64,000 nt of DNA from Perna viridis (lineage: Eukaryota), in the NCBI GenBank assembly GCA_037379345.1, contig CM074522.1, positions 5,890,001 to 5,954,000 of the forward strand, given 5' to 3'. This document shows positions 7,601 to 58,600 of the stretch, in pieces (positions within the stretch are counted from its first letter, which is position 1; every line of letters starts with the position of its first letter). Made by a program: the position numbers and the translations under genes. The notes beneath the pieces are model-generated. The model made no database searches. It was given only the letters and a program-made list of their open reading frames with translations, and was not told where the DNA came from.

Positions 7601-10600
7601 TTATAAACAAATTTATAAATCATCTTCACTAGATAGCTTAATGTAGACTCCCTGCATATTGTTCTATCTAACCTACTAATGTTATATTTTTGACAGATTC
7701 ACTATTCATAATCTTGAGACAAGAAGACAGTTCCTGCTGAATATGGATCTGATGGCATGTTATGAGGCTAATGGACCATGTGCTCTAGAGGAAACCATCT
7801 TCTCAGAGTTTTTACTGAAGAAACAGTCTTGTATTAGAAGTGCTGGATTTATCAACCAACAATGTAAGTGAAAAATTGTATAATTATATCTTTTCCTTTT
7901 AAACAGGCATATTATCTCATGATATACCCAACTCAATTGGAATCACCTTGTTTGTCCGTCCATTCATCAGTCTGTCTTAAGAATTATGAAGTTAAGAAGT
8001 TTTTCGAAGGTCTTATACTTCCGAAATATGTGATGTCACTCGAGGTATTTTGTTCATACTGCCAGTGCTTTAGTTTTTTGTGTGACGTTTTGTTTTCCCT
8101 ATCTTTTTTTTTATATGTGTAATCTATTTTATTCGGTTCGCTACATTATGTATGTCGATCATCTTTGTTTCCTGTTTTTCTGCCATGTTTTTGGATTTTT
8201 AAGTATTTGAATTATCCCACTGCTGAAGCTTAGGTATTTTTTTGCCAGTATTTTAAACAATATTAATACCAACCAATAGAATGCATCCTAGTTATTATAT
8301 TTCATTCATTATTTAGTTACAACATACAGTTTTACTTTTCAGCTATAGTCATTTAAATTCATTTTACTTCAATCCTTTCTAGTTAACTATAACACTTGGC
8401 TCAGTGCTGTTGGTGTAGCACCAAACACATCACCTCTGCCATACTGGGCCAAAATACAGCTGATTGATGAACTGCAAGTTAACAACTTCTTTGATTTGGA
8501 CACCAAATGTTACGATCAGATGACTCCATTTATGACTGCTACTGCTACTGATGGTTATAATAATGGTAAGTGTATGCATAAGGCTAAACGAGCAAAAAAT
8601 GTGAGTATATGGTTACCTGACTACTCTGTTTTTAGCTGCAACCCAAATTCATTTTATGGTGTTATTGGAAGTCGAAACTTTAAAGGGTCTTCATGGAATG
8701 TGATTTTTAATGAAAAAAATGCAAATAATTCAAACAGTTGAATGCATACTTCCTCCCATTCATTAGCATTACTAAGTGAATGGATTTATTTCAAATTTAG
8801 TATGTGACTTTATAGAGATGATGATTGAACTGTAAAGGATTTTGATGATTGCTATCAAATATCAACCACTGTAAGAATGAGGTATATATAGCACAATAAT
8901 GTATGCAACTTGATATTTTTTTTCATTTAGAATGTACCTCAAGCCTTTCTTTTGAGACCTTCACCTCTTCTGACACCATAGTCTGCAGTATACCCACTGA
9001 ATGTAATGGTGCTAGGTGTTGCATGGATATACCCCAGCTAGAAACATCTCTGGAATTCAAAATGATCATTGACACCTGTGGCAATAGACTTAGACTGAAA
9101 GTAGACAAGTTGGAGTTTGATATACCCCTTCATGATTTTGATTATGGTAGCAGTGATGCCTTGTCTATCTATGGTTTTGCAACCCTTCGGTAAGTTTAGC
9201 TTGTTTTCCATTTATTGGTGTGAACCAACAATCATTTATTCTACTTCTGGTTTTTCAGATTGTCATCTAAAACATACCACTTGAAATGGACTTGTTATGG
9301 AATATGATCAGCATTACCATTGGAACAAACTACATGGAAAGCACTCTCTATCTAGATAGTCATGGAAACCCCCCTTGTTTATCTAGACAGTCATGGAAAA
9401 CACCCCTTGTCTGTCTAGATAATCATGGGAATCACCCCTTGTCTATTTAGAAAATTTTATAACATATTGATACATGGATTGTGTTGAAAAGACTAGGACC
9501 CTATCAAAGAAAAAATACCAAAACACATTTTCCAAGCAGATTGAACTACAAAATTAATTTTTAAAGCAACGGATTATCTTAATTGTTTGAAAACCTTGAA
9601 AATTAGTACTGCAAACATAACCTTCAACTGAATCAATGAAAAATAAGTAAAAATATTTCTAGTTTGTATCATTTTTGCCTCAGACTTTTATATGTATATT
9701 TATTTATTCTAATTTTGATTTTAACAGTTACACCATTGTGAATAAACTGCTGTCAAACCAGTTTGAAGTATCAATGTCTGTAAGGTTCTGTTTGAACGCA
9801 GACACTGCCTTACCATGTGACCAAGAATACACCATCTTTAATAGCACAATCATGGACAAACCAACATGTGACTTCAACACTGACTTTAAACATACAGGTT
9901 TGTAGGAATTAGGATTATTGTTTTCATGTTAAACTTTTTGATCCACAGAACCAAGTCATGTTTTAGGACTTTGTCTTATACACATTATTATATTACTGGC
10001 CTGAAAGTGGAATTTTGTTTTATACACATTATTATATTAATGGCGTGAAAGTGGAATTTTTACAAGTCAACCATCATTTTTGCCGACTCCTGGCTTCGAA
10101 GTACAGGTTTATTGTGAAGATTTCAATCCTAAAATTCCTACCACAATGATAATAGAATATTTGAACTCATTATATTTGTCTGACTATAATTATACATAAT
10201 TGCCAATCCCAGTCTTCCTCGTAAACCTTTTGGCTCGCATGCCCAAACCTCATTTTGAAGTGTTTTTTTCATTGACCCACAAACATTTTTACCAGCCTCT
10301 GGCTTCACTCTACTCTATTTGTAAAGAAAAATGTAATAATGTACAGATACAAATGCAATATGGGTAAAAAAAAGAATCCCATGGCTGTATGGTTAGAAAT
10401 TATCAAGGGATGTTAATAATTATTAATATGGAAAGTAATTGTTACTTTCTATATAGACATGCATTATGAATTAAAAAAAAATAATATCCATTAATATACA
10501 AAGTATTTGTAACCATTTGTTTTCATGATTTTACTTCCTCACAAAAATTATGAACATAAATAATTTACAGATCTAAGACAAAAGTTTACAGAGCTAAGCA

Positions 10601-13600
10601 GGATTATCTCCCTTTCAGGTTTTTCTTTGTCAACTTATTTGGATGACAGGAACCTAACAACTAACTTGACAGATGCTGATGCCGATCAACTGATTCAGTA
10701 CCTAGAAATCAATGATTTCATGAGTGAAGTAAACCTGTGTAATTTCTCAGGTGCTACCTACGCGTCAGCTGTGGATGGGTGGAATAATGGTGAATTAGAT
10801 TTTATGCTGTTCATGTATTAATTTTCATAATAAGTTAACTTTTATCGTATAAAAGTTTACAAGTAGATCTGTCAGTTTAGACCTGTTATAGGTTCATTGT
10901 TTTGTTAAAATTTTAAAAATTGTTAAAAAGTTGCTAATTTTACTGATTTATCTCAAATGTTTTATTAAGACTCTCCCTGACTGAATTACATGTATCTCAA
11001 TGCAATATTTTATTTTCAGACTTTTGATAATGTGAAATATTACACTTAATCTTTTCAGGTGTGAGTGAGGTTTGGTAATGAATTTTATTTTGGTCTTTTT
11101 CAGAGTGTGGCAATGTAACAAATAGTGACCTTGATGCACTTACATCAGACGAGATTGCATGTCATATTGGGACATCCTGTCACAATGTTGAATGTTGTGT
11201 CAAGTCTGAGATTTTGAAGAGAGACTTTTTTGTAGCTGTTGCCATGGAAACATGCAGTTATACATTGTCTATTCAGCTGGAAAATCTCAAAATTGAAAAA
11301 GATCTGCTGAACTATGTGTGGGGTATGTTGAATACTGACTTTTGGTAAGGCTATTTCACATAAAATTTGCTTTTCCACAGAAAAACTTCTTTTTTATATT
11401 GGCTATGGTCGGGAATACTTTGACATCCATTGTGGTTGAACAAGAAATGTTCTGAATTCTTTTTATTTGTTTCAGTTCCAGTGGTGAAAGAAAACCAATT
11501 GATTTTTTAAATGTTTTTATTTTACAGGTACAGAAGAATTGATCAATCTTTATGGCGTCTTCAAATTAAGGTAACTACAAATGGCTTTTGCATCTTAAAA
11601 ATAATTCAGCAAAAGTATTTATACTCCCTGCAAATAAAGTTTAGAGGGCATAGTGTCTTGTGTACTGTTCTGACAAATAGTTACACATTTGCACTCTTCT
11701 TCTTATGCACATCAAGGAGAAATTAATTAGTCTGCTTGTCCATCATTAGAACAAAACATGGTTTCTTTCAACTCGGCGGGTGTTTCTAGAGAAGCAGAGG
11801 ACACTTACCCTACCAGTGCACCTGGTCGATGCTCCCAGTTTTAAGTGGAGTCCGAGTTGCTCATATACTTTATTACTTTGTATGTATGATTTTAGTTACT
11901 TTATGTTCTTTGTTGTGTATGTCTATTTTCCATGTCTGGTCTTTGTCCCTGGATTACATTCTTTTGATTACCCCTATAACCTTGGTTCCCTTGATTACTC
12001 TTCTGTGATAGAATGTAAAACCACAATCAAGCAACCAATCAGTTAATTGTCCATCAATCTTTTTTTAATAATCTACCCCTTAAAGATACTTTGTACATCA
12101 GACAATACTTTAAAATGCCTGACTTTTCCCCTTTTTTTCTGACTAACCTATCTCCCTTCAAGGTACCTGGTACACCATGTTGCCTCCAGTAAACATTTTA
12201 CAGTAGATATGGACGTTAAGCTCTGCTATGAGTCTTCAGGTGGTTCATGTCTCCAGGAATATACCATCTTTGCCAGTGATAAACTGTACTACCCAGAGTG
12301 TACAAATCCATCTCTGCCATTCTATGGTAAGTTTTAATTCATGTTTATACCACCTTACTTCTCCAAAGAGAGTACTTCATAAAATATCAGGCCTTGGTTT
12401 CATAAAAGGTCTTAAATTCGGAATTTTCTCAAATCTTCAATTTCAAGCAATTTGATTGGTTGAAATTTTGAATTAAGGAGAGGAACATCAAATGTGAGAT
12501 TAATTTTTGATAACTAGTAGAAAACTTTTAATTGAGGAAAGGAAAGATATGAGGAACATCTAAATTTGAAATTGGTAATTGATGGGTAGTAGAGAACAGA
12601 TAAACGTCATAACGGTTTTCTTTGTTTTTTGTTACGATTCCATGGATACAGCATCACTTTTATGCTCTTGCAACATCATGTCACAATGACCTTGGCAAGG
12701 ACAATAAAATTTATGTCATTCGTGTCATGTTTTCCAAATATAGTTCACTTATAAAAGTTAAAAAAAAATGTAGGAATTTTTTTTGTATGATCAACTATGA
12801 CTTTTGTACATGGATTATTGTAATACTTTGTAGGTATATCTTTTGACTTCTGGAGGCCAACACCTTGTACCCTGTACACTGGTAGCAACTATGCTAATGG
12901 TAAGTCTATAATGATTTAATTCAAATCTGTCTAAACCAAACCCTGTATGTTTTAAAACCTGACGTCCCTTTGTATCAGTTTTAAATTAATTTTCACCTGT
13001 GTAAACTGAACACCTGTCAAAAGCTAACAAGACTTTCAGCCTGTAAGGGGTTCAGTTAAGCAGGTAACACTTTGCTCACTATGTTATATGAGTAATATTC
13101 ATAAGTCATTTTAAAGATACGTCCATTCATGAGTTACAGGGGCATTTTGTCCCAATTTTTTTTTTCGCTTTTTAAAAGTATTTAATTTTAAGTTGGATGA
13201 ATTTTATTTCATTTTTTCATCATTCTTACAGGTTGTATTGGAGTGACATTTACAACCTATGCCCAGACTCGATGTCGAATGGCAGCTGATTGTCACAGTG
13301 TTGAATGTTGTTTAGATCTTGACTATATTCCTGGTACAAGAAATACTAGACTTACATTTTCGATTGACAATTGTAATGATAGGATGGACTATGAATTGGA
13401 GAGACACACTTGGACCAGAACTGGGTTGGCTAGCATTAATGGTAGGTATCATACTTAATGTGAAAAGTTTAGTTCTGAATTTTATACATCTACACAGCCA
13501 AATTTGCCACATATGATAATCGTATGGTTATCATGTGATGAGCATATGATAAGTAACATATGGTAGTCGCATGCTTTTCATATGATTCTCATATGTTATT

Positions 13601-25600: not shown

Positions 25601-28600
25601 TATAATTTCTGTTTCCTAGGTAATGACCCCCACAACCTTAAGGTCATGGATATGTTTACAAGTTTCAAGATTGGTAGATTGATTGCACCTCATTCAGCAC
25701 CTACATCAATAGAGGCTACACACGGTGACTGTGCCAAAAGGTGTGCTGATATGATCAAAACCAAGTGCATGAGCTTCAACTATGACTTCTTGAATGCAAC
25801 TTGTGAACTTTTAGAGGGCATTGAAGGTCACCATTACAAACTGGCTGAAGCTGGATTGTACCAGCATTATGAACGTCTTGGTATTGGCCATATAATCAGT
25901 TTTGATTATAATGATGTTAGTCTCATCCACAATAAGACACACTACTTTAACTTCCGTATTATCAACAGCTTGGGTTATGAGAGTATATTGTCATCTCAGG
26001 CCATAATGATGGACCTTACTCCTCCAACACCAGGTAAGTTGACCTTGAATCTTTGAACTCTGACTCCTGATTGATAATTTAACTTTGACATGATTCAGAG
26101 GACAAAAGCAGAAGAGTTACTGCTTGTAAAAAATGAAATGTATGACTTACTCAGGAAGAGTATAAACCAGATGTTTTCAGCACTTGGATCTACATAAAAA
26201 AATCCATACAACCAGTAGCATATATACTGAATATTACATGTCAAAAACTGTATCATATGATGTATCAAAACCAAACCCAAATTAAGGGCTAGCATCGTGA
26301 GATGTGATATTGGTTGAGGGTTGACATGATACAGATTTTGACTTGTAAAGTTCTTTATATCATATATTTCATGAGTGTTCTGATTAGGGGTAAAATAGGG
26401 CATGCTATATAGGCCTTTTGATATGCTGTAGGGTAAGCCATATAGGCCTTTTGATATGTTGTAGGGAAAGCCATATAGGCCTTTTGATATGTTATAGGGT
26501 AAGCTATATAGGCCCTTTGATATGCTGTAGAGTAAGCTATATAGGCCTTTTGATATGCTGTAGGGTAAGTCATATAGGCCTTTTGATATGCTGTACGGTA
26601 TGCCATATAGGCCTTTTGATATGCTGTAGGGTTAGCCATATAGGCCTTTTGATATGCTGTAGGGTAAGCTATATAGTCCTTTTGATATGCTGTAGGGTAT
26701 GCCATATAGGCCTTTTGATATGCTGTAGGGTAAGCCATATAGGCCTTTTGATATGCTGTAGGGTAAGCTATATAGGCCCTTTGATATGCTGTACGGTATG
26801 CCATATGGGCCCTTTGATATGCTGTAGGGTAAGCCATATAGGCCTTTTGATATGCTGTACGGTATGCCATATGGGCCCTTTGATATGCTGTAGGGTAAGC
26901 TATATAGGCCTTTTGATATGCTGTAGGGTAAGCTATATAGACCTTTTGATATGCTGTAGGGTAAGCTATATAGGCCTTTTGATATGCTGTAGGGTAAGCT
27001 ATATAGGCCTTTTGATATGCTGTACGGTATGCCATATAGGCCTTTTGATATGCTGTACGGTATGCCATATAGGCCTTTTGATATGCTGTAGGGTAAGCTA
27101 TATAGGCCTTTTGATATGCTGTAGGGTATGCCATATAGGCCTTTTGATATGCTGTACGGTATGCCGTATAGACCTTTTGATATGTTATAGGGTAAGCTAT
27201 ATAGGCCTTTTGATATGCTGTACGGTATGCCATATAGGCCTTTTGATATGTTATAGGGTAAGCCATATAGGCCTTTTGATATGCTGTAGGGTAAGCTATA
27301 TAGGCCTTTTGATATGCTGTACGGTATGCCATATAGGCCTTTTGATATGCTGTAGGGTAAGCTATATAGGCCTTTTGATATGCTGTAGGGTTAGCCATAT
27401 AGACCTTTTGATATGCTGTAGGGTAAGCTATATAGGCCTTTTGATATGCTGTACGGTATGCCATATAGGCCTTTTGATATGCTGTAGGGTAAGCTATATA
27501 GGCCTTTTGATATGCTGTACGGTATGCCATATAGACCTTTTGATATGCTGTAGGGTTAGCCATATAGACCTTTTGATATGCTGTACGGTATGCCATATAG
27601 ACCTTTTGATATGCTGTAGGGTTAGCCATATAGACCTTTTGATATGCTGTAGGGTAAGCTATATAGGCCCTTTGATATGCTGTAGGGTAAGCCATATAGA
27701 CCTTTTGATATGCTGTAGGGTAAGCCATATAGACCTTTTGATATGCTGTAGGGTATGCCATATAGGCCTTTTGATATGTTATAGGGTAAGCCATATAGAC
27801 CTTTTGATATGCTGTAGGGTAAGCCATATAGACCTTTTGATATGCTGTAGGGTATGCCATATAGGCCTTTTGATATGTTATAGGGTAAGCCATATAGGCC
27901 TATTGATATGCTGTAGGGTATGCCATATGGGCCCTTTGATATGCTGTAGGGTAAGCTATATAGGCCTTTTGATATGCTGTACGGTATGCCATATAGACCT
28001 TTTGATATGCTGTAGGATATGCCATATAGACCTTTTGATATGCTGTAGGGTATGCCATATAGGCCTTTTGATATGCTGTACGGTTTGCCATATAGACCTT
28101 TTCATATGCTGTAGGATATGCCATATAGACCTTTTGATATGCTGTAGGGTATGCCATATAGGCCTTTTGATATAGGGAGGTCAGTCAAAATATGAAGTAT
28201 ATAGAAAATGTACAAGTTTATATTAGTTTGAAAGAGCCCAAGAAATGTAACTTACTGGTGCAAAAATTTTTAAAATCGGTCAAGGGGTTCAAAAGTTATT
28301 ACAATTTAAAGTTCAAAATTTTGGTCATTTTTCTTGTGAAGGCAAAAATGTCACATTTTGGGCATTTCTGTGGCCCACATAAGTCAAACAGGTAAAGAAA
28401 TTCATACATTGTGTCTTAATCATTTAAATAAAGCCATTTCATACTTTGATTTATGCCATTCAGGAAACTTGTATCTTAGATACAAAGAAAATTACACTTT
28501 TTTAAAATTGGCAAAAAAACACTTTGGACTTAGTTTTTTTTTGCTATGTGTCAACAGCATCGTGAATTAAAGTGCCATTTTTGGATATTCATATTTGGAA

Positions 28601-40600: not shown

Positions 40601-43600
40601 GGGAGACCAACAGGGAGCTAACAACATATTCAATGGCACTGAGGTACCAGGCTACATGAACCAGTACTCTATTCAAGGTAAGACCACTAACTCCAGTAAG
40701 TTGTAACCCTCAATCATCCAGACTCTATCTTTTATCAGTTATAGCCAGGGTTCGTTCCATAGAGCTTTTTTTTATCAGTATATAGCCAGGGTTCATTCCA
40801 TAGAGCTTTTTTTATCAGTTTATAGCCAGGGTTCATTCCATAGAGCTTTTTTTATCAGTATATAGCCAGGGTTCATTCCATAGAGCTTTTTTTTATCAGT
40901 ATATAGCCAGGGTTCATTCCATAGAGCTTTTTTTATCAGTTTATAGCCAGGGTTCATTCCATAGAGCTTTTTTTTATCAGTATATAGCCAGGGTTCGTTC
41001 CATAGAGCTTTTTTTTATCAGTATATAGCCAGGGTTCGTTCCATAGAGCTTTTTTTATCAGTATATAGCCAGGGTTCGTTCCATAGAGCTTTTTTTATCA
41101 GTATATAGCCAGGGTTCATTTCATAGAGCTTTTTTTTATCAGTATATAGCCAGGGTTCGTTCCATAGAGCTTTTTTTATCAGTATATAGCCAGGGTTCAT
41201 TCCATAGAGCTTTTTTTTATCAGTATATAGCCAGGGTTCATTCCATAGAGCTTTTTTTATCAGTTTATAGCCAGGGTTCATTCTATAGAGCTTTTTTTAT
41301 CAGTATATAGCCAGGGTTCGTTCCATAGAGCTTTTTTATCAGTTTATAGCCAGGGTTCATTCCATAGAGCTTTTTTTTATCAGTTTATAGCCAGGGTTCG
41401 TTCCATAGAGCTTTTTTATCAGTATATAGCCAGGGTTCGTTCCATAGAGCTTTTTTATCAGTTTATAGCCAGGGTTCGTTCCATAGAAATTATTTGATTT
41501 TTGTGGGTCTTGGTCAGCTGGTCTTTAACTTAGACATACCATCAAATCAATTTCTTACAAGTTCCAGATATTTAAGTTCCTCAAATAAGATACTGTATTG
41601 TGGGTAATTTTTGCAGTGTCCTAATTTTGGCATATTGTAGCAGTCTGTCGAAAAACACCAAAATAAAGTCTGCAAAATGATTATTCTGAACTAAGGTACT
41701 TAGAGCACAACTTAGCATCAGACAAAATTATAATCACCAAAATTTGTGGCATACTTTTTTGCCTCACAATCCCAAATTTTACACCTGCCAAAATGTTAAA
41801 GGTATTGTGTTTCATGTTTGCTCAGCCATGAAGCTTCTTATTCTAAAACTTGTATGATTGTTGTTCCTAGGTCTTGGTGACAAGATGAAGCATGGAGACA
41901 AGTACTATGTCACAGTGACAGCCATCAACTTTGTTGATAAGGAAACCTATGCCTTCTCCACAGCCATTGGTATAGATTCCACAGCTCCTACATTTGGCAA
42001 GGTGATTGACCTTCATACAACCTACAGAGTTGATGTTACAAACAGTGATGTTACTTTACAGATGAATGCAAAGAAATGTGACACAGATGATGGTAGGGTT
42101 AAATTTGTGGTAGTTATTTTATATCAGTCTTAGTCTGGTTTCTTTATGTATTTTAAATTCAGTTTTTCCTCTAATCTCACTCAAACAGTGACCATTCAAA
42201 TTAGTTAAATGACAATTTTAAGGAATGTGAGTAATATATCAGTTAAAGAATGTGACAGAAATAGAATTAAATTAGGAAGAAATACACTACATAATCACCA
42301 ACCTAGTAAATTACTTTTTATAAGCTTTACCTCCCTTCAATGTCGTCTCTGTGGCCTTACCTCCCTTTAATGTCGTCTCAGTGGCCTTACCTCCCTTCAA
42401 TGTCATATCTGTGGCTTTACCTTCCTTTAATGTCATCAGTGTGGCCTTACATCCCTATAATATCATCTTTATGGCTTAATCTTTTTATTAATGTATGATG
42501 AATGAGCTTTCTCTTTTGTAGAATGTGATTTACTGGATGCTGTATGCTCTGAATCCATGACATCAGTGTCTGCCACCTGGCAACCATTTGTAGATCCTGA
42601 GTCTGGAGTGAGCAGGTAAGTTAGTTCTTTATATATTCGTTTAAATAATTCTTGTTTTTACTCTTTTGTTAAACATTGTTTGGTTTAGCCTGAAATTCAA
42701 TTTGCTTTGAGATTTAAACTTATATGATTGATGGATGTATTAAAAAAATGTCAACTCAAAATCTCTCAGACTTTTTGTCATGAACATTAAAATGCTTTCA
42801 GTGCAAAGTAATAATGAATTCGGAGTTTTGTTTCTGTAATAAGTAGAGGAAACATTAAAAAAAAATATCGCAGTGAAATATCTTACTCAAATTTTTTTCA
42901 CAGATACCAGATAGCTCTGGGTACGACCCTTGGTGGAGGTCAGATCAAACCATTCTTTGATATAGACTTGTCAGAGGGTGTTAGGTCATATACTATTGGT
43001 GGACTCAACCTTAAGGGCTACAGAGTGGTATGAACTTCTAAATAATATTGTACATAGTCAAAACTGTTAGTTATTTGGATTTTGTTGAGTAACCATGGGA
43101 ACCAAGATTCGAGCTGGATCAATGGAATATATTCCAAAGATAATGAATAGACAGGCAAAATAGACACACACAACAAAGAAAATGAAATAACCAAAATAAT
43201 ACATACAAAGTAGGATGACAAGATATTGGTGATACTACATGTATCAGAATAGTAACCAATATTTGGCTGTATTTAAGAACACTAAAAACAATCATGTTAC
43301 TGATAAATGAACTTATTCATTGTAATTGTTTGACAAAAATTGATCTCTTGAATTTCAGGTTTATGTGTCTATAAAAGGTATCAATGGAGCTGGACTGACC
43401 AGTGTAGCTACATCTAATGGACTGTACATGTCATATCTCAGTCAAGGCATGGATGCACTTAGTCATGTTGGAGTTTTTGATGTTCTAGAAAACTCCATTG
43501 GTGATGTGTAAGTGTAGATATTTTTTTACTGCTTGTATAGGGAAAAAGTATGGGAAAATTTTCCTGCCATTTTTTCCATAGTTCATTTGAACTAATTTTA

Positions 43601-46600
43601 CCTATCAGTATCTTAGAGTGACAAACTTTACAAACTTTTTGATGGTTATTTGTAAAGGTAATTAGGTATAAATACTTTGAAGAGTAATCAAAGGAACCAA
43701 GGTTATAGCGGTAATCAAAGAGTAATCAAGGGAACCAAGGTTATAGTGGTAATCAATGAGTAATCAAGGGAACCAAGGTTATAGCAGTAATCAAAGAGTA
43801 ATCAAAGGAACCAAGGTTATAACGGTAATCAAAAGAATGTAATCCAGGGACAAAGACCAGACATGGAAAACAGACACACACAACGAAGAACATAAAGTAA
43901 CTAAAATCATACATACAAAGTAACAAAAGTAAATGAGCAACTTGGACTCTCACTAAAAACTGGGAGCATGGACCAGGTGCACTGGTCCAATAAAATATCT
44001 GTGTTTTGCTTCTTTATGTGCTTCACTTTTTACAATTTATGCCTGATTCTTAGACAGGGAAGTATTTAAAGACATTGGCAATTCAAGTTAACATGGGAAC
44101 ATTAAAACTACAAAAAAAATTTTCAAAATCAAATTTTCCTTTCCTTTATTCTTTTTTCACATATTTTCGTCTATAGCCAATTCCAGTCTAGCGACGATAC
44201 ATACAGAGCATCATGGGATGTGTCAGGTGATCCCTGTCCTGCCACCAGCTATGAATGGAAGATCCAGAGGCTTGATGGTAAAGTGATCCAGGATTGGCTT
44301 CCCATGAATTGTAAGTAACTTATTGTCCATATCATCAGAGGTTCTTATTTGTTTTGGAAGGAACCTTCATTATTAGGATTGCCTTGGTCTCCATCTTTTA
44401 ATCGTCATGCAGATGATTTTGTTCCTTGGTAATTTTACTTATATTTACCACTTTGACCAAACGATGGTTGTACTGTTGCATTAATGGAAGCTAATATCAA
44501 CCACTGGTAATGCTGATGTAGCTTAACTGTATGTTAAGTCAGTTTGGACTGAGGAATAAACATGGAGTCATAAAGTTGTACTCATGTTATCATGGGCAGG
44601 ACCTTTATAACTAAACATAATCTAGAAAAATCTGTGTCAAGCATGACATGATGTCAGCAATTTTGAAGAAAACAATGTAATATGAACTTGAATATTGATA
44701 ACTAATAAATCAGATCTATTTATGTTTTTTTATAAAGGGTATATGGTGGCACAGTTGTTGCATTTCTTCATAACTGTTCCCTTTTTTTAATTTACTGTAT
44801 AGCAGGCAATTTTTGCTGGATGCTTATTTTGGCTTACTGAAGCAGTTTTTTCTAAAATAGCCAAATGTTTACTCTGGGCTAAAGTACCTAGTACACCACA
44901 TAATATCTCACAAAAATCTTTTGTATGCCTTTTTGCTTTGGTCATCTCAGGGTAGGGTACCAAGTCCTGGAGGTCATGGATTCAAACCTGTGCTGATTCA
45001 CACCAAAGACTTTAAAATTGGTAGTCACTCCTTCCTCAAACGCATGGTAATTAACTGAATGTAATGAAAACGGGTTGCTTTGAGTCAGAATAATGTTTCT
45101 GAATGAGGTGGCATGCTTACCTGCAGGCTCTTCCTTCTAGGAGCTAGTAACCAGCACAATAAAACTCTGGCTCAACATGTCTGACTAGTACAACACAGGT
45201 TGTGATTGATTGGTAAATCGTTCTTGTCCTGAACTGCCTGAAACATCTGCCATTAGTTGTTAAACCATAATCAATCAATCTAGAACCTATTTAATTGGAC
45301 TATCTATATGAATTGCTTTTTGTTTTCAGTGGAAACCAAGGGAATGACTGATGGTCTAGGCTTAGAGAATGGCAAGATGTACTACTCACTGGTTAAGGTG
45401 ACCAATGCCCTAAACTTCACATACATCTTACGATCAGATGGTGTCACAATAGAGAAGAACCCACTATTGCCTGGAAAGGTCTTTGACGGGGATATCAAAG
45501 GTTATGACTTGAACTTCTTGCCATCAAACAAGATTGTTTATGCTAACTGGGATGGATTTGGTCTGCCTGCTGATGCTATGAAACAAGTAGATGTTCAATC
45601 AGGTATTAGACTTATGTTAAATGCTTGTAAGGAGAGTTGATTTAATGTAGAAGGCCTGTGTGCAACAAGTTGAAGTTTTCTTTTAGTTCTTAGCAGTAAT
45701 TAGATATATATTTATCTTTGCATCATGGTGAAGGGTGATAATGTTGTTGACATGATGTGTTAATTATTTTTTATACGCCTGTTAAACTTGAGGTAGCCAT
45801 GATAGTGCCAAATCTTTTGTACATTTTTGGGGAGAGGGTGGTATTTGACAGGGCTCACAGTATTTCTAGTTGATCATATAAATTCATTACAAGCATAAGG
45901 ACAAGTTAAATGGTCAATCATGTGCTTAAAGATCTTTGTTACTGATAGTTGTTGCAGTTGACAACAATACAGGAAAAAAATTGCTTTTTTCATATAATGA
46001 TATTACTGAATTGACAATTCAGTGAATAATGTTCTAAAATCCACTTGTGAATCTCGATGATTTTAAGCACATATGAATGAATGAATTTGAATTATTCTTT
46101 TCAAAGTTGTCAAATTCAAAAGATATTTTCTGGTTTACCGTACATACTTTGTCATTATTTTTAAAAAGGTAACCCTGGTCTACAAGTTGATGAGACATTG
46201 CTTGCTGAACAGGATCCCAACCAGGAAGTTGTATTCTATGAAGTGGCTGTCGGAACTGACAGAAGATTCCCTAAAACCAGAGATGACGTCGTGCCATTTA
46301 CAAATGTCTGGTTGAACAAAACTGCAATATTTTATGACCTTGAGTTGACCCCTATTGCGGGTATCTACTATTTCACTGTGAAGGCATACAGTGCCTCATA
46401 TTCTGTTGCCACAGTAACATCCAATGGATTCAGAGTTGGATATGATGGTGGAGTCATAGGTTAGTTCCATTTTTTTGTGTTGGTGGCTTTTTTCATTTTA
46501 CTCCAACTGTTAAAATGTCAAACATACTTATAAAGTTAAAGTCATATTGAAATTTGAAGGTTGTGAGGTGTTTATTATTTCAAAGCACATATTGCCTTCA

Positions 46601-49600: not shown

Positions 49601-52600
49601 GACAGTTAAACTGTATATCTTAACAAATACTACTATTTTGGAAGTTTGGACCAGGGATGACAAAAAATATGAAAGAACCTAGGAGTTTAAATTCATATGT
49701 ATTGAGAGCATTTAAGGTTTTACCTTCCTCATGTTATTACCATAAAGTTTAGTAAGTACATGTATATTAGATTCAAAAACTGACCTGAGCACTGCAAAAC
49801 TAATTAACTTTTAGTCACTCAAGATCCATTGTAACTCAAATCAGAGTCATTAGATTTTATGACTTAATAACAGGGACAAATTCTTTTTAAGAGATTAGAC
49901 TAATTAAAAATAGATAATTTGCCTTCAATTATCTTTTCCTGGTGTCTTAAATGTGTTACACCGTTATGTAGGAGTCTGAGCCACTGACCGTTAAATTCAT
50001 CATCACCAACAAAGCAGGCCTATACATAACAGAAGAATCTGTTCCAGTACTAGTGGACCAAACACAGCCAAGTCCAGGAAAAGTCATTGATGGACATGAC
50101 TTTAAAACAGATAGAGTCTGGTTCAATTCACCAAGCCTTGTCAAAGGTAGGTACAAATTTATTTAACAAAATATATTCCTGAAATTTATAAAACTTGTAT
50201 TACAAAAATACAACATAGTAGTCATAATCTCACTATAGAGAGTGGTAGATTTAATGGTATATCCAGGGATAACAGAATTTGTACATTTTGTAATTTAAAT
50301 GATATAGAAGATGAGATGCATTTTATTCTCAAATGTCCAGTTTATCAAGGATTTAGAAACTTTTATTAAGCCTTACTATTGGAGAAGGCCATCTATGTTT
50401 AAATATATTCAGTTATTGAGTTCTAATAATGTAACAGAATTATGTAACATGAGAAAATTATATATTGTGAATAGTTTGTTGGTTGGTGTATTGTATTGGA
50501 GGGTACAAGTTTTTTTCTTTTCCCTGCTTTGGAGGAGGGGTATGATTGTTTTACCTACAGAATGACTTCTAACTTTCTCTGCAAACATTTGATATTTTGA
50601 CACAAAAATGCATTATAGAAAGATGGCTAAATATGTCCTTGAAAGAGTGCTAGACAGGAAATTAAATAGTCAGGGGATTAACATCCATAATGGAAAGAGT
50701 AATTAAGGGAACCAAGGTTATAGCGGTAATCAAAAGAATTTAATCCAGGGACAAAGACTAGACATGGCAAACAGACATGCGCAAAGAACATAGATTTGCA
50801 AAAGGAAATTGTGTATAGTAGTATGGTAGCTGTCGTTTTAAACAAAATGTGAAGTGAAATTCTTTTTTGTTTAGGTTCATTATTGCACCTTGCTACACCA
50901 TTTGGTCCGGCGTGTCCAAACCGTGCAATCTCACTTACCAATGACACAGGGTGGATGATACTTCAGCAGATAGGTTTCCGTGACCCAGCTGGGGCCAACT
51001 GGCCAATCAAAATGAGAACAGAGAATCTTGGTCAAGAAATTTACGATGATGAAATTTGGATCAAGATAGCTAAAGATACCAACTTAGATATGATATACTC
51101 GGGAGGTTATTATAGAAAAGCTGACTATGAGTTGGGAGGAGAGTGGCAGGTAATGGATTTTTTATGACTTATAGTACATGATTTTGTAGAGAACATTAGT
51201 AGTGGTTTTAGGGGTTAATTTGCATTTTTTCGATTAAATGCTCGTTAAGGGCTAAGTCAAATTTGATGAAATTCATTGGCATTCCTTATGTCAATGACTA
51301 AGACCATAGCCACAAAATTTGGAAATAGAAGTTAGAAAAGATACTTCCATATTTCTTTGGTCGCAAAAAGAGGTTTCATTCCAAGAATAAAGATTTCATT
51401 TATTGCACGTATACCTTTGTTATCATGTAGTTTCATGTAATTTACTGATCTTTCAATGTCACATTTCTTTTAGGCAACAATAAAAGCTGCAGCTGGTAAT
51501 GGATATGCTGCCACTTCGATGATGTTATGGGATGGACCACCAGATGGCATTATGCCATACAACTTTGTACCAGAGGCTGACTGGGCTTCAGATGTTTGTT
51601 ATTGCTGTTTTGAGAATCCTATCCCTGCTGTAAGTTTAGTTGTATTCAGCCCTAAGCGTTGAGAATCCTATCCCTATATTTACAGAGGGATTTCAATTTC
51701 CTCTGTCCTTCTCAATCACGAAATAATGTGAAAATTTGATTACTGCAAATATTTCTAGATATACAGAAGAGGATTCATTAAGCTGAAGGGGTATTTACAA
51801 AAATTAGATTAAAAAACAAAGGATTTCTCTTGAAAATCTGAAGTTTAAATTATTGCAATTCTGTTTAAATTTTTTCTACATTTATTATTGCAGTCATGTC
51901 CATGTAATTGTACAGACTATTTGGCTGGGAAGTTCGGTAATGGAACTATAGTAGTGCCATCTACACAAGCACCAGAAATCGTTGTCAATACAACATCATC
52001 ACCTTACAACATTGTAGAGAATCCAAAAGGTGGCGCTGTCACCTCTCCAATCGATCTGTCAAAACAACCAGCTAGGGCATCTTGTGGAATGGAAATTTTT
52101 GCTGGTTAGTTATGCATGGTCTATGTGTTGTTAAAAGAGTTTTCATGTCATGGAAGTTGGTTTACATGGATTATATTTATTATTCCTATAGCCTTGTTTA
52201 CAGTTAACATATCTGTCAAGAGTTTGTTTACTTACTGTGCCTACATAGCTGAAAAGAAGATACAAGTTTTTTGTTTAATTAATTCATTTTGGAAGTGTGA
52301 CATTGTTTTTGCCCTTGAAAATTTGAAATAAGTGCTCCATTTTTCATTGAATGTGGAGGTATAGAGACAAACTTTCAAAATTTATGATCATCCAAAGTTA
52401 TCTTTTACTGTATTTATTTTCTTTCAAAATTTCACACATATACTCTATCCAAAAACTATTCAGGCAAAACTTCATTGGAGTAAACCAGATATATTCCATT
52501 CCTTCTCTCCAGAATTGGAGAAAAGAATTGCATGAAATTTTGAGTTTTCATAATTCTGTCCACAAAAATTGTCTTGCTTGGCTTCCCTTAGCATTTAGCT

Positions 52601-55600
52601 ATATTTACAATCTCCCCCAGCCTGAAATCTTTATTCTGCTTCTGTTAATGAACTTGTGTATTTATAATTATAGGCCCTGACCCTCACATAGTAACTTGGT
52701 GTAGAGTGTTTAATGATACATTACCTCCACAAGCTGTTGAGGACATCCTAAACTTTGACCCGTCAGCTGATTACCACACCTACAAGATATCAGTAGGGCC
52801 AGAAGCAGATGATCCTGTCAATGTAAGTATTGCATTGATGATGATTTGTTGAAAGTGCAACAACCAAATGACAAACTAAGGGTGGCAATGTAGCCTGTAA
52901 TGTTTCTGAATTATCATGGGTTTTTAAACATGCATGAAGCACCTCCCGTCTGATTTTATATAGACTGCTACTTAAAATCTCAATATAAAGAACTCACATT
53001 ATGGAACTTTACTGATGTTGCTTTTTTTCAAAATTGCAAAAAAATTAAATGGACTATAATGATAAAATCAGATTAATCAACTCTTGCAATATTCTCTTAA
53101 TTGATAGTGCATAAGTGCAAGTATTTGTGGTTTATGTCAAACAATTAATTTTAAAGAATGAAATTAGTTGCTATTTCTGAATACAAAATACCAATCATAT
53201 ATAGAGCAAATTTTGATATGCTGTTCATGTGAAATGATGAGTTGAAGTCATTGTACAGGGAAACCTGTCTAAACCAAATCCTAAACAATCCAGGCACCTG
53301 TCTAAAACTAAATCCTAAACAATTCAGGCACCTGTCTAAACAAGACACTTTTTAAAGTCGCTTTTTATCAATTGTAATGTGTTTTGAACCTTGTTAAACC
53401 AAACACCTGTCTAAACCAACACATGTCTACCAGAGGTGTTTACTTGTACAGATTTTCCGTATTTTCTATTAATTTTGTCTGTACATTTGATAAAATTATA
53501 GAAAGTTCAGGATTTTATGGATCATTTCCATAGAAAACTGAAAAATATGGGTTGTCATCAATCAATATAAACAGATTTGGTCTACATCAAACACCTGTCT
53601 AACCAAACACCTGTCTAAACTGAACCTGACTAAACCAAACACCTGTCTACACCAAACCTGACTATACCAAACACCACTATAAACCGAACATGACTAAACC
53701 AAACACAACACCTGCCTAACCAAATACCTGTCTAAAACAAACACCTGTCTAAACCAAACACCTGTCTAAAACCAACACCTGTCTAAACTGAACCAACTTT
53801 TAAGTCCAAAAGAATTCAGTTTAAACAGGATTCACTGTATGTGAGTGAAGTTTTTAGGGGGCTAATTTCTTGTTTCTTTACTTTTTGCTAATAGGTATTG
53901 ATGCAGCTTCAATTATTTGTCATGAAGTATGAAAATAATTTTTTTTTTCCTTTTCAGCCCACATGGTGTTTCTATGTGTATGTAGATAATGTATTCTTCA
54001 GTAAAGTGTGTGGAATGAAACAACTGAGCACCGACACTAACCTTGTCTTCCATGTGTTCAATAAAAATAATATAATGCCACCAACGAACGACACATTCAA
54101 TCCATTCTCTACCAAAGCTTTCTTCAGGAATGTTATCCTCCCTCCAGCACCAGGAGCTTACTGTAGATATGGAGCCCCATTCCGAGGGGGAGAAAACCCT
54201 ATTGTAAAGTATGAGATTGGTATTGGTTCAACCTCTCTTGGAACTGAAGCGGTGCCATACCGAGAAATGATAACACCATGTTTGCCATGTTATAATTTCT
54301 GTTCGCGGTACAACTGTAATGCCACCTGTGATGCTGATTTACATGTCCTGTACCAGTTTGAGATGAAGGACTTCTATCTAAATGCAACCAGAAAGGAGGG
54401 CAATGAAACCCTTAGTGTTGATTATTATCTTACAGGTATTCTATATATATGTGTATATATAGAAAGGTCTGAAAAATTCCCAACGATGTAAGAACTGTCA
54501 AATTTGCTGGATTTTGTGCAGGCGGTGTTGCCATAGATGTCACAGTGGTACGAGTTTGAGTCCCGCAGAGGGAAGGACCAAAAGTTTGCATTGCAAATTT
54601 GACAGTTCTAACATCGTTGGGAATTTTTCAGACCTTTCTATACGTTTACATATCTTCCCTGTATCAATTTTTTTACTCCTCAGGTTTTATCCATTTCGTA
54701 GTGTAAATATTTTTTCCCCAGTGACCCACTCTTTTCTTTACATAATTTCATTAAACACCTTATAATGTTATTTGTGAAATTTTATGAAATCCTTTTAATT
54801 TTTTCAGGGTTTTTAAAACCTACTAAGACAAAACCTATGGAAAATCTAGATAATTTTTTTATATCTCAAAAACGAGCACATTGATCAATTTTTTTTTTTA
54901 TATTTACCTATAATTACCTATATGAAAGATCTCAATAGAATTTACAACCCTTTGAAATCCTTGTTATTCTGAAATAAAGTAGTGAACGTATTTAAATCAC
55001 GTTATTGTTGAATACAGTTAACAAAATACGTGTACATTAATTGTACCCATAATAAATCTGAGCCCTGTCTATACCAGACATTTTTCCTGTTATTTGTTTC
55101 AGTGTCATGTGAACCAATTTCAGACATTATTTTCTAACAGAATACGCTACTGTGAAAGTACTTGTATTCGTGGGTACCAATTTTTTTAGATTAAGAAACA
55201 ATTATCAGTTTGTAGATTGTTGAATTCGTGGATTTGACATCTCTATCATACAAATGAGAAATTTCCTCTTTGTTTGGAACCAAATTTCGAGGTTTACCAA
55301 ACCCACAAAAACCTCAAAAATTAGTTCCCCACGAATAATAATACTTTCACAGTATTTCAGATCTAGATTTTACAGTTATGTTTCTCTTTTTGCGGTTAAT
55401 TCATCAATTTCCACCATTGCTGTTTGAACTTGTCTTAACACAACAAAGCCTTGGGTCATAACTAGATTTGGTTGACAAGTTTTACTGTATCTACAATAAA
55501 ATTTTTACATCTCTTTATTTGTCCCATTTTAGTAAAAGCAGTATTAGGATCAGGAGCAACAGCTGTAGTATCATCTAATGGTTTTTATATTGATGAATCA

Positions 55601-58600
55601 CCACCTATCTATGATGGAGAAGCCATGACAGAAATTTACATTGATGTATCACAAGGGGCATTCACTCCTGTCAAATACCAAGCTTCCAACAGTACAATCA
55701 AAGCTTTCTGGAGGTGTTATGATGATGAAAGTGGTGTTGTGGTTAGTATTGGTTTGGATACAAATTGATTTAAGAGATGAATCCTTTTTTCATTTATAAG
55801 TATGTTCAAGTATTTATGATGTTTTTTTTTTAATTCAATGATCTGTCAATGATAAATTATGGTACACTACTGTCAAGTTGTTTCTCTATTCAATATTCCA
55901 TGTGTATCCGACTCAGACCTGGGAATTGCTCAAAAATCCTTTGAATAATTCTTATTACTGTCTTTGACACTGGGTTTTTTATGGGTATGAGGTCAGGATA
56001 CCTTATTGAAGTTCTGTGTCAGAGATTGTTCTACTTGAATAGCTCAAGATAAAGCAAGGAGACTATAATGAGGAATAGAATATTTATAATCTTGGAACAA
56101 AGACAGAACAAGTACACCATTAACTATAAAAAAAACATAGACAATAAAGATGAATGAGCAACTTGTACTTCGCTGAAAACTAGGAAAATTTGCCATGTGC
56201 ACTGGTAGGGTATTAAGAGTATGAATAGGTAGTAAAATATTCAAATCAGATTCTTCATTCAATGGCTCTTTGATATAATTTTACAGGAAAATTGGTGGGC
56301 TATAGGTCTGACAGTTGGAGGTACAGAACTTCAGGACTGGGAGTCAACTGGCACCAACCAAACAGCTATCAACAGTACATTAGAAGGGATCTTAGAACAT
56401 AATACAACATACTTTGTCTCGCTGCGGTGTGAAAATGGAGCAGGACGAATCTTAGAATACAATGATACTAAAGGTAAGTTATTTTAAAGATAATTAAGGT
56501 CAATTGAAAAAATAATTCTTTCCTGCACCTAAGTATACAATTTATGAGCAGTTTATAATGCAGCCAGATGTAAAATGAAGTATGGTAACAGAAAAAAAAC
56601 ATTTCATTTTTGGCCTTAAATTTATATATTAACATCTGGTAAGATAGATAAAAGATACTTACATGTACCTGAACCAATTCTTGCAGCTATAATTGCGATC
56701 AGTGACCAATGAGCGATAAATATATTTTACAGATTCCGTTTTTTTTAGTTTGTCAATTTTTATATGTATTAACTTACTGTAATAGATTTAAACATGAAAT
56801 AATTTCTCTTATTCAACATTTATTCTATTTTTAACAAAATACAATATGTGTATTTAATATTTTAAACTAAAGGTATACAGTCAAACCTCGATATGTCAAA
56901 CTCGGATTAGTCAAAATCTCGGATAACACGAACTAATTACAAAGTCCCAGCAAAACTCCCCTTACTCCAATACAATTTTACCTCGTATGACTCGAACTCT
57001 GATGAATTGAAACCTCAGATAACTCAAGGTAATCAATCAGTCCCCTCGATAGGACTTCAAGGTTAATTAACCCTGATGTCTCGAGGTCAAATAATTAGTC
57101 AGAAAACTGATTGATTTATTACAAAACATGATCGAAGTGTGTTTTAACAACAATCAGCGTGGCTTTTCAAATTGATTTGTTGACACTCATTATGGTTTGA
57201 TTTGTTTATTTAATTAATTTACAATTGCGCATGTTGTTTAAAGAAGCTAATTGTATTAATAACACCTAGGTATATACACTAACAATGATATCGGATATTT
57301 TGATAAAAAAAATACAGATGAATTGTAATGGTATCTAACTATTTAATGAAATATCAAAGAGACAATAGTAAGGGTATTTCAACGACTACATTTATTTCGC
57401 TAGTGAATTTGAAATTTTATCGTAATAATGTAGAGCACATGGTTTGACAATACTCCTGACTGTGAATCAAACAAAGCAGCATGTTATGAACTATGACGTT
57501 TTTGATGTAGAAAAAATAAAAAGGAAATTTCACTAAAACACTTGGTGCCCGTTCAGTATTTCAAACATGATATACAACATACAAAGAAAAAATATCTTCC
57601 GATATGAAACACAAGACATTACGAAGTACCGTGTAAAGTGAAGTACATGTACAAGCACAACAAATGATGTAAATACAGAAACAATCATTCACCAAACTAC
57701 TTGTATTTCGGGTTTATCCTCGACCTCGGATTACTTGAACCTTGGATAACTCGAATATTTTTGCATGGTCCCTTCGTCTTCAACTGTATTTAATATGGTA
57801 TTATTTTGGATTTGTTTTGATGGAAATTATCAAATTTACATGAACCGATCATATGTCAGTTTACATAACAAAACTGTTACCACATTTGTCACCGGTCAGT
57901 GGTTCTCCATCCATCAGGGATCAATCAGTCAGCATTCATCGATCCATCAAATAGTTGTGTGGATTGGCTCACAAACTGTATATATACCATGTAAACTTTA
58001 TAGGTTGTAATATTGAATCTGAACGGACATCTTAGTCTGTGATAGGATTCTGAATATTTTACTCTCTCATGAAGTTGAAGAAAATCTATACTAAATTTGT
58101 CAGCTTTGTCCTCAACATAAAACAAGCTTTTTAAACAGGAACCATAACTATGTATCAAATTGACAGGTGTCACTGTTCTACTGATTCCGCCTGTCGATGA
58201 TGTAAATGCCACTATTCCGGGAGCTGCTCCTTTATCTGCGGATGTGGAACCAAGTGATGCCCTTGCCAGTAATGATGGAAAAAAAATAGGAATCAGTTTT
58301 ACATTGAGTCATGATGAGTCCGTTAGACGATATGGTGAGAAAAATACTTATTAACTTTAAGATAAACAATTGTAATATTCTTGTGAGATCTGTCTGTTAC
58401 CAGAAATAAGGTAGCGCTTCAGATAGGTTACTGCTGAAAATAGATATTTCATTTTTTGGAAATGAACTACAGACTAGCAATTTCTTTTCTCTTGGTTTCC
58501 TTAACTCTACATCTTCTACTCGAGTGTAAATGGGTCATGATTCAAAACTTATTTTTTGTGAAGAGTAATTAAAGTTTGTTATTTTATAAGGAGTACATAA

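Follow-up and report, generated by a model that had tools for sequence, protein, structure and literature searches.

The window analyzed here is a 64,000-nucleotide stretch of the Perna viridis genome (GenBank assembly GCA_037379345.1, contig CM074522.1, positions 5,890,001 to 5,954,000, forward strand), and it contains part of a long, multi-exon, plus-strand gene that extends beyond the window edge. We think it quite probable that this gene specifies an expressed giant FN3-array protein, one module of which harbors a nested, very diverged and catalytically dead jelly-roll of the GH16 type that would offer a non-catalytic binding surface. The nested domain measures about 320 residues from its entry Cys to its exit Cys, includes 12 Cys residues in the window copy, and is distributed over exons that we number e0 to e6 together with those of its host module (Table 1). 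A preliminary description, made from the letters of this stretch, had proposed a dead GH16-like domain inside an FN3-like module; that structural reading is right, and is backed by structure prediction, homologues, and transcripts.

The fold evidence comes from two single-exon (type B) homologues of the multi-exon (type A) domain found in the window, which served as targets for AlphaFold2. The first model (L013:508-2100, from a 10-row alignment including six type A proteins) has an all-β core at pLDDT 70-88 and a disordered linker. Among the PDB matches listed for it by Foldseek, all are GH16 structures, with E 1e-7 and TM(target) about 0.7; in a representative-based scan (one chain per 40% cluster), the best 30 chains are all GH16, and the best GH16 chains beat the first non-GH16 family by 5 Z units while covering at least 90% of the enzyme length. 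The second target (L065:3577-5394) is about 36% identical to the first and its insert was modelled less confidently, at pLDDT 55-75, with the split host at 50-84; pLDDT is about 80 in the FN3 module preceding the host, a well-modelled part that Foldseek matches to FN3 arrays. Exon-fragment rows badly misaligned the N-terminal half in MAFFT, and fragments were excluded from the alignments on which the models were built. In hhalign, the type A profile matches the type B profile at 98.5% probability (E 2e-15, 326 columns). An HMM built from type B alone matches the window exons in order (e1 at HMM positions 49-73, e2 at 88-99, e4 at 262-278, and e5 at 288-366; E 4e-9), and tblastn of L013 against e5 gives E 5e-13. 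Family members with a predictable structure are thus modelled with the GH16 (clan GH-B) β-jelly-roll, superposable on solved GH16 structures, and the window domain is predicted to share this fold by homology to the type B models. The preliminary description had staked its reading on such a jelly-roll in structure prediction, and both homologue models contain it.

The nesting emerges most directly from an HMM of the host module, built from 17 uninterrupted homologue modules (consensus D-t-t-P-P-x-x-G ... W-x-x-F-x-D-x-E-S-G-I ... Y-Y-v ... N-x-A-G). This HMM splits cleanly around the insert, which accords with the proposal of a Cys-bracketed insertion within an FN3-type module. On L013, it matches with positions 1-29 before the insert and 24-109 after it; on the window, e0 matches positions 89-110 and then 1-23, and e5 matches 35-57 (exon residues 74-96). 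On the Potamilus streckersoni homologue P0010, the same HMM tiles residues 773 to 2513 and begins again from 3021, and the interval left uncovered corresponds to the split host. Its matches extend to the modules identified as fn3 by Pfam, and PF00041 scores 47.8 bits on uninterrupted array modules of P0010 and 32.4 bits on those of P0040. Both by profile and by its β-sandwich of about 100 residues, with W on strand B and Y-x-V...N-x-A-G on strand F, the host is an FN3 module. In the second model, a strand L-N-G-L-L-A-L (S-L-L-H-L-A in the window) lies just before the entry Cys, and the insert is therefore placed after the second host strand and before the conserved F-x-D-x-E-S-G-I loop, at the point occupied by W-x-x-F-x-D in uninterrupted modules.

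The two bracketing Cys (codons 50913-50915, within A-C-P-N, and 54162-54164, within Y-C-R-Y) are invariant in both alignments (A1 and A2). Nesting of this kind is possible because the termini of a GH16 roll are adjacent, and since its N- and C-terminal strands adjoin, the entry and exit Cys probably form a disulfide that would staple the base of the domain. A second, small insertion in the host follows the nested domain at about 54279-54332, with five Cys (P-C-L-P-C...C-N-A-T-C), none of which varies in any homologue, Ptychodera and type B included. The carrier proteins are 2,670-6,827 residues long and have EGF modules and cadherin-like domains beside their FN3 arrays. FN3-type modules make up this giant protein, which is secreted or exposed at the surface, and the giant rod envisaged at the outset is indeed a giant array of FN3-like modules.

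The domain is not confined to the window. Three further type A copies in the P. viridis genome (at C12:24.08 Mb, C12:28.91 Mb, and C4:9.01 Mb) share its exon pattern and are 43-58% identical to the window copy for most exons (47-49% for e1) and lower for exon 3; the corresponding matches reach E 1e-8 to 1e-50 for most exons, e2 among the exons matched, and are weaker for exon 3, down to about 0.1. Two distant type B copies lie on opposite strands of C9, at 34.64 and 34.70 Mb. In each, a single uninterrupted frame of about 1,100 codons spans several FN3-like modules and the nested domain, whereas type A is divided into many short exons. These type B copies (L013, C9:34638374-34641559, and L014, C9:34700745-34703930) are about 62 kb apart and 88-96% identical.

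Beyond this genome, exon e1 was compared with 1.84 billion representative proteins in an exhaustive HMMER scan; there were only 24 matches, of which the named ones are from Potamilus, Mya, and the hemichordate Ptychodera flava. The P. streckersoni protein P0010 (3,942 aa) and the Mya arenaria protein P0024 (2,670 aa) agree with the window's exon borders in tblastn, exon by exon (E 4e-10 for P0010 on e2). Two further long matches to e1, a plant protein and a metagenome protein, consisted of several short stretches only and were taken as spurious. Length-windowed protein searches, which yielded 2, 2, and 6 proteins, add Solemya, Patella, and Haliotis proteins (3,625-6,827 residues) and two type B proteins; none was a type A protein of a length suitable for folding. 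The named homologues are all titled "hypothetical" or "uncharacterized," apart from one UniRef title, "EGF-like domain-containing protein," and a literature search found no description of this domain family. The Ptychodera models P0023 and P0035 break off within the insert, and the exons that they lack are located immediately downstream, within the next called gene (L064:10001-19300, CM083794.1). These exons hold the C-x-C-N-C cluster, the M-G-F-Q-I-Y strand, the F-D-P-S and W-N motifs, the exit Cys, and the host module where it resumes; the public Ptychodera gene models are probably split or truncated here. With these exons found, the complete nested architecture is common to molluscs and a deuterostome. 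The family is distributed across bivalves, gastropods, and a hemichordate (Ptychodera), and is therefore old.

Evidence for expression comes from sequencing runs that have no library type on record. Fourteen runs, tentatively taken as RNA, contain 0.26-0.27 of the words sampled from 49900-54600, a fraction equal to the exonic share of that stretch. Four runs from four studies each provide one long contig (1.5, 5.4, 10.7, and 15.8 kb) in which e0 to e5, the exons covered by this comparison, are joined, with 0-1 mismatch per exon. These contigs have a piece that begins at e0, and they skip exactly 50147-50874, 51150-51473, 51630-51893, 52105-52673, and 52823-53957, all bounded by GT..AG. Because they are intron-free, the contigs derive from spliced RNA or cDNA; and because those of four runs carry exact exon joints, the gene is transcribed and the nested domain is part of its mature spliced transcript. 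A pseudogene or an assembly artefact was also considered, and is ruled out by intact frames, canonical splice sites, spliced transcripts, and cross-phylum conservation.

Whether the domain could still act as an enzyme depends on which of its strands takes the active-site position. Both models proceed from a strand equivalent to the A-F-W strand of GH16 through a short helix and the disordered linker to a further strand (E274-280 in the first model, E348-353 in the second), which seven more follow. Seven strands also follow the active-site strand of lichenase, and the first strand after the linker is therefore taken as its equivalent. In this strand, no family member has E-x-D-x(-x)-E, no register yields two acids, and the nucleophile position is occupied by Gly or Ser; the motif that defines GH16 is E-x-D-x-E or E-x-D-x-x-E, carried by a single strand (PMC6827312). 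The preliminary description had aligned the catalytic E-I-D-I-E with S-C-G-M-E at 52080-52094, with the nucleophile and Asp lost and the last Glu kept. The loss of the motif holds across the family, but the Glu occurs only in this copy: the 11 further type A sequences in the comparison have Gln there (consensus [CM]-G-[IVLF]-Q-[IL]), and the three type B lineages have His. The window Glu is thus an exception to a conserved Gln, not a relic.

The loop immediately ahead of the active-site strand is enlarged to some 80-130 residues. Type A loops are Cys-rich with N-glycosylation sequons, and that of the window copy has six Cys and three N-x-T sequons. Ahead of this loop, a semi-conserved [N/D]-x-x-x-E segment (N-F-V-P-E in the window, D-F-T-F-E in type B) offers an argument for a glycosidase or transglycosylase that is still active with non-canonical residues, whether through this segment or through the window-specific Glu. 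D-F-T-F-E, like D-Y-T-R-E in Patella and D-Y-I-T-E in one own-genome paralogue, has the i/i+4 spacing of E-x-D-x-E. This pattern is nevertheless unconserved (D-H-R-P-V in Mya, D-Y-T-P-R in Haliotis), and the segment is unstructured in both models, which put another strand in the active-site place. The first position in the window is Asn, and the window copy is therefore without a carboxylate nucleophile under either reading. To our knowledge, no GH16 enzyme uses an Asp or Asn nucleophile. Continued activity is accordingly very improbable, and we infer that a domain with these residues would be unable to act as a retaining GH16 hydrolase or transglycosylase.

The concave sheet of the domain, held off the FN3 rod, would form a binding surface without catalysis. 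Of the candidate ligands, a polysaccharide or glycan is the likeliest, although we would rate it at slightly less than an even chance. Loops at the site of the expansion shape or border the -1 subsite in GH16 (PMC6827312), and the expanded loop could be a lid or an extension of the site. The same fold might instead act as a protein-binding or purely architectural module without a carbohydrate ligand, like the LamG, TSPN, and MAM domains of matrix proteins. We regard this as a real but minority possibility. The catalytic acids are lost, no typical GH16 cleft aromatic could be shown to be retained, and the expanded, glycosylatable loop directly before the active-site strand, at the border of the -1 subsite (PMC6827312), may occlude the cleft; the carrier, with its FN3 arrays, EGF modules, and cadherin-like domains, also resembles a matrix or adhesion protein. 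Glycan binding, however, is what the known non-catalytic GH16 relatives of invertebrates do: these bind glucans, and about 9% of GH16_4 members are without one or both catalytic residues (PMC6827312). The active-site-position strand also retains a conserved polar and a conserved aromatic residue (Q and Y/F) on one face. More speculatively, and with a rather low expectation of being correct, the family could be an ancient bilaterian one that predates the protostome/deuterostome split: FN3 rods bearing a GH16-derived silent lectin module with a cysteine-knotted, glycosylated lid, which may act as a polysaccharide sensor or anchor at mucosal, shell, or matrix surfaces (for example, for algal or microbial glucans), evolved separately from arthropod betaGRP/GNBP, and invisible to current domain databases.

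Several points weigh against a binding domain of GH16 type. The fold predicted for the window domain is transferred from homologues, and the bracketing disulfide and the cleft residues are likewise putative. E-I-D-I-E may lie on S-C-G-M-E or be shifted by two residues; both placements fit the side-chain alternation of the strand, and the exact register is provisional. The [N/D]-x-x-x-E segment is placed by neither model. No Pfam family matches the insert, whether exon by exon or on contiguous or whole homologues. PF00722 (family cut-off 22 bits) has no match at E up to 10 in the window exons, L013, P0036, or P0037, and none at E up to 0.01 or 0.001 in P0010, P0024, P0023, P0040, or P0042; phmmer with the modelled type B construct (L013:508-2100) has none among PDB sequences. 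As a positive control, six viral-contig GH16 proteins score 60-93 bits with PF00722. This profile also has no match in six frames of the whole genome, a result that is uninformative for an exon-broken gene. In hhalign, the family aligns with 25 GH16 sequences, a comparison set of viral-contig genes fetched by a degenerate W-P-x-x-G-E-I-D-I-M-E pattern, at a probability of 13-23% (P about 1e-3), and global mode gives a nonsense alignment. By family profile match, then, the insert does not belong to GH16. The local hhalign match does fall in the right place, on the N-terminal GH16 strands (N-V...L-x-I...S-G...Y-G-x-x-E-x-x-x-K), and takes in the e1 part of the family consensus; with the linker removed, a low-confidence extension, unused for the catalytic register, is co-linear with F-H-x-Y and Y-V-D-G. 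The motif likenesses to GH16 noted in the preliminary description are real, yet they lie far under profile acceptance.

This lack of detection by sequence profiles also favors a further explanation, in which the insert is a generic concanavalin-A-like sandwich (for example, L-type-lectin-like) without specific GH16 kinship, and GH16 tops the list through its many structures. The structural ranking is difficult to reconcile with that explanation, given that the best 30 representative chains all belong to one family, which leads the next by a clear Z interval and is covered over nearly its whole enzyme length. The weak hhalign signal, on the correct N-terminal strands and with its co-linear extension, points the same way. 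The active-site strand of 1GBG comes immediately after a loop that includes a short helix (residues 91-100; PMC6827312), and this helix recurs in both models. A generic sandwich is therefore improbable. The conserved paralogues, the mollusc and hemichordate homologues, and the two homologue models that superpose on GH16 enzymes together put the resemblance of a dead, nested GH16-type roll beyond chance.

The features of the gene around the nested domain are collected in Table 1. Exon borders were read from splice sites and cross-checked by tblastn of Potamilus P0010 and Mya P0024, which agree at the e0 border as elsewhere; e0 ends in phase 1. Six plus-strand exons, e0-e5, with phases consistent throughout, hold all the strings quoted in the preliminary description, each at the place given there. 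The string YSGGYY...GGEWQ | ATIKAAAGNGYAATSMMLWDGPPDG straddles the exon border 51149|51474, a quoted 12-residue string falls within exon 52674-52822, and FYVYVDN, NLVFHVFN, Y-C-R-Y, and FRGGENPIVKYEIGIGS are all within exon 53958-54435, the second part of which is conserved in all homologues.

Table 1. Exons and motifs of the nested domain and its host module (window positions), with the active-site-position strand across the family
Feature	Position	Strand	Content
Exon e0	49972..50146	+	End of preceding FN3-like module, then host module start (D-Q-T-Q-P-S-P-G... from about 50056)
Exon e1	50875..51149	+	Last pre-insert host strand (S-L-L-H-L-A), first bracketing Cys, N-terminal jelly-roll strands to G-G-E-W-Q
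Exon e2	51474..51629	+	K-A-A-A-G ... M-L-W-D-G strand pair, counterpart of GH16 K-x-P...AFW strands
e2 segment N-F-V-P-E	51561-51575	+	Before long loop
e2 C-x-C-C	51597-51608	+	Start of long loop
Exon e3	51894..52104	+	C-x-C-N-C, Ser/Thr/Pro/Asn-rich linker with three N-x-T sequons, then active-site-position strand
Strand S-C-G-M-E-I-F-A	52080-52103	+	In exon e3; GH16 active-site position by strand order in models
Exon e4	52674..52822	+	Two jelly-roll strands (V-T-W-C-R-V-F; ...L-N-F-D-P) and Y-H-T-Y-K-I-S strand
Exon e5, first part	53958..54164	+	C-terminal jelly-roll strands W-C-F-Y-V-Y-V-D-N, L-V-F-H-V-F-N-K-N-N, A-F-F-R-N-V-I-L, and second bracketing Cys
Exon e5, second part	54165..54435	+	Host FN3-like module resumes (F-R-G-G-E-N-P-I-V-K-Y-E-I-G-I-G)
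Exon e6	55533..55741	+	Host module end (V-K-A-V-L-G-S-G...F-Y-I-D) and next module start; from splice sites and tblastn of P0010/P0024
Active-site strand, window			C-G-M-E-I-F
Active-site strand, own-genome paralogues			C-G-V-Q-I-F, C-G-V-Q-I-L, C-G-I-Q-I-V
Active-site strand, Potamilus; Mya			C-G-F-Q-I-Y; C-G-I-Q-I-Y
Active-site strand, Solemya, Patella, Haliotis			C-G-[IL]-Q-[IL]
Active-site strand, Ptychodera			M-G-F-Q-I-Y
Active-site strand, type B			G-[FV]-H-I-P

The window is AT-rich (about 33% G+C) and lies on a 38 Mb contig of an assembly that totals 723 Mb. Several other features of the window were recorded in passing. An upstream exon of the same gene, at 25568-26053, has the look of a PAN/apple-type domain (C-A-K-R-C ... 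C-M-S-F-N-Y ... C-E-L-L) in the frame listing, which is its sole source. In the intron between e0 and e1, an open frame on the plus strand (50151-50366) ends in C-x-F-C ... H-F-x-x-x-C-P, like a zinc-binding reverse-transcriptase tail, and is probably a non-LTR retrotransposon remnant, to judge from these motifs. A dispersed element of about 90-134 nt recurs at 81-95% identity in several introns (50695-50784, minus strand; 11869-12002, plus; 15955-16088, minus; 43794-43927, minus; 43118-43212, minus) and may be SINE-like. Summed depth reaches 50,000-100,000 in the transcript-contig bin that includes the 50.7 kb copy, which indicates that the element is very abundant genome-wide in RNA assemblies. 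The stretch at 54453-54600, in the intron after e5, is presumably another repeat, since transcript contigs reach a very high summed depth there as well (3,000-11,000). Long spurious open frames on both strands arise from each of two intronic minisatellites, at 26264-28200 (33-nt unit, >50 copies) and 40659-41534 (40-41-nt unit, about 20 copies).

Invertebrates, arthropods among them, are known to employ dead GH16 rolls as binding modules in their glucan receptors, which are small and recognised by profiles. The family described here is an unannotated one, a very diverged and nested form of that known theme. It differs from those receptors in a divergence that extends beyond Pfam, PDB sequence search, and profile-profile comparison; in the insertion into an FN3 loop; in the large lid before the former active-site strand; and in conservation from bivalves and gastropods to a hemichordate. 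The family provides a candidate, open to testing, for the recognition of glycans by giant surface proteins of invertebrates, a domain model that can be added to databases, and a clean natural case of domain nesting.

Comparison with known systems places the domain closest to GH16 while setting it apart from each of them. The GH16 enzymes with E-x-D-x-E (the Bacillus lichenases 1GBG, 1MAC, and 1BYH; Vitis EG16, 5DZE/5DZF; XTH, 1UMZ; and Crh5, 6IBU) have the fold predicted for the window domain, but that domain is without this motif and without a PF00722 match, and in its family 80-130 residues are added to the loop that leads into the active-site strand. Those enzymes are free, whereas the window domain lies within an FN3 module of an animal protein that runs to several thousand residues. 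The betaGRP/GNBP/LGBP proteins (GH16_4) resemble it as animal, extracellular GH16-fold domains without catalytic acids, and provide the precedent for this fold as a binding module. Those proteins, of about 50 kDa, can be recognised as GH16_4 by sequence and often have a glucan-binding domain at the N-terminus; the window family escapes the GH16 profile and sits in a giant FN3 array, and Pfam scans of P0010, P0024, P0040, and P0042 show neither a GH16 profile match nor a glucan-binding-domain match. Given the missing PF00722 match and the low hhalign probability, the family is too diverged to be placed in a GH16 tree. The L-type lectin domains of ERGIC-53, VIP36, and Emp47 lie about 5 Z units below GH16, have another loop architecture, and belong to cargo receptors of the secretory pathway. 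Finally, the circularly permuted Bacillus glucanase (1CPN) is an engineered enzyme, whereas the window domain is a natural nested domain.

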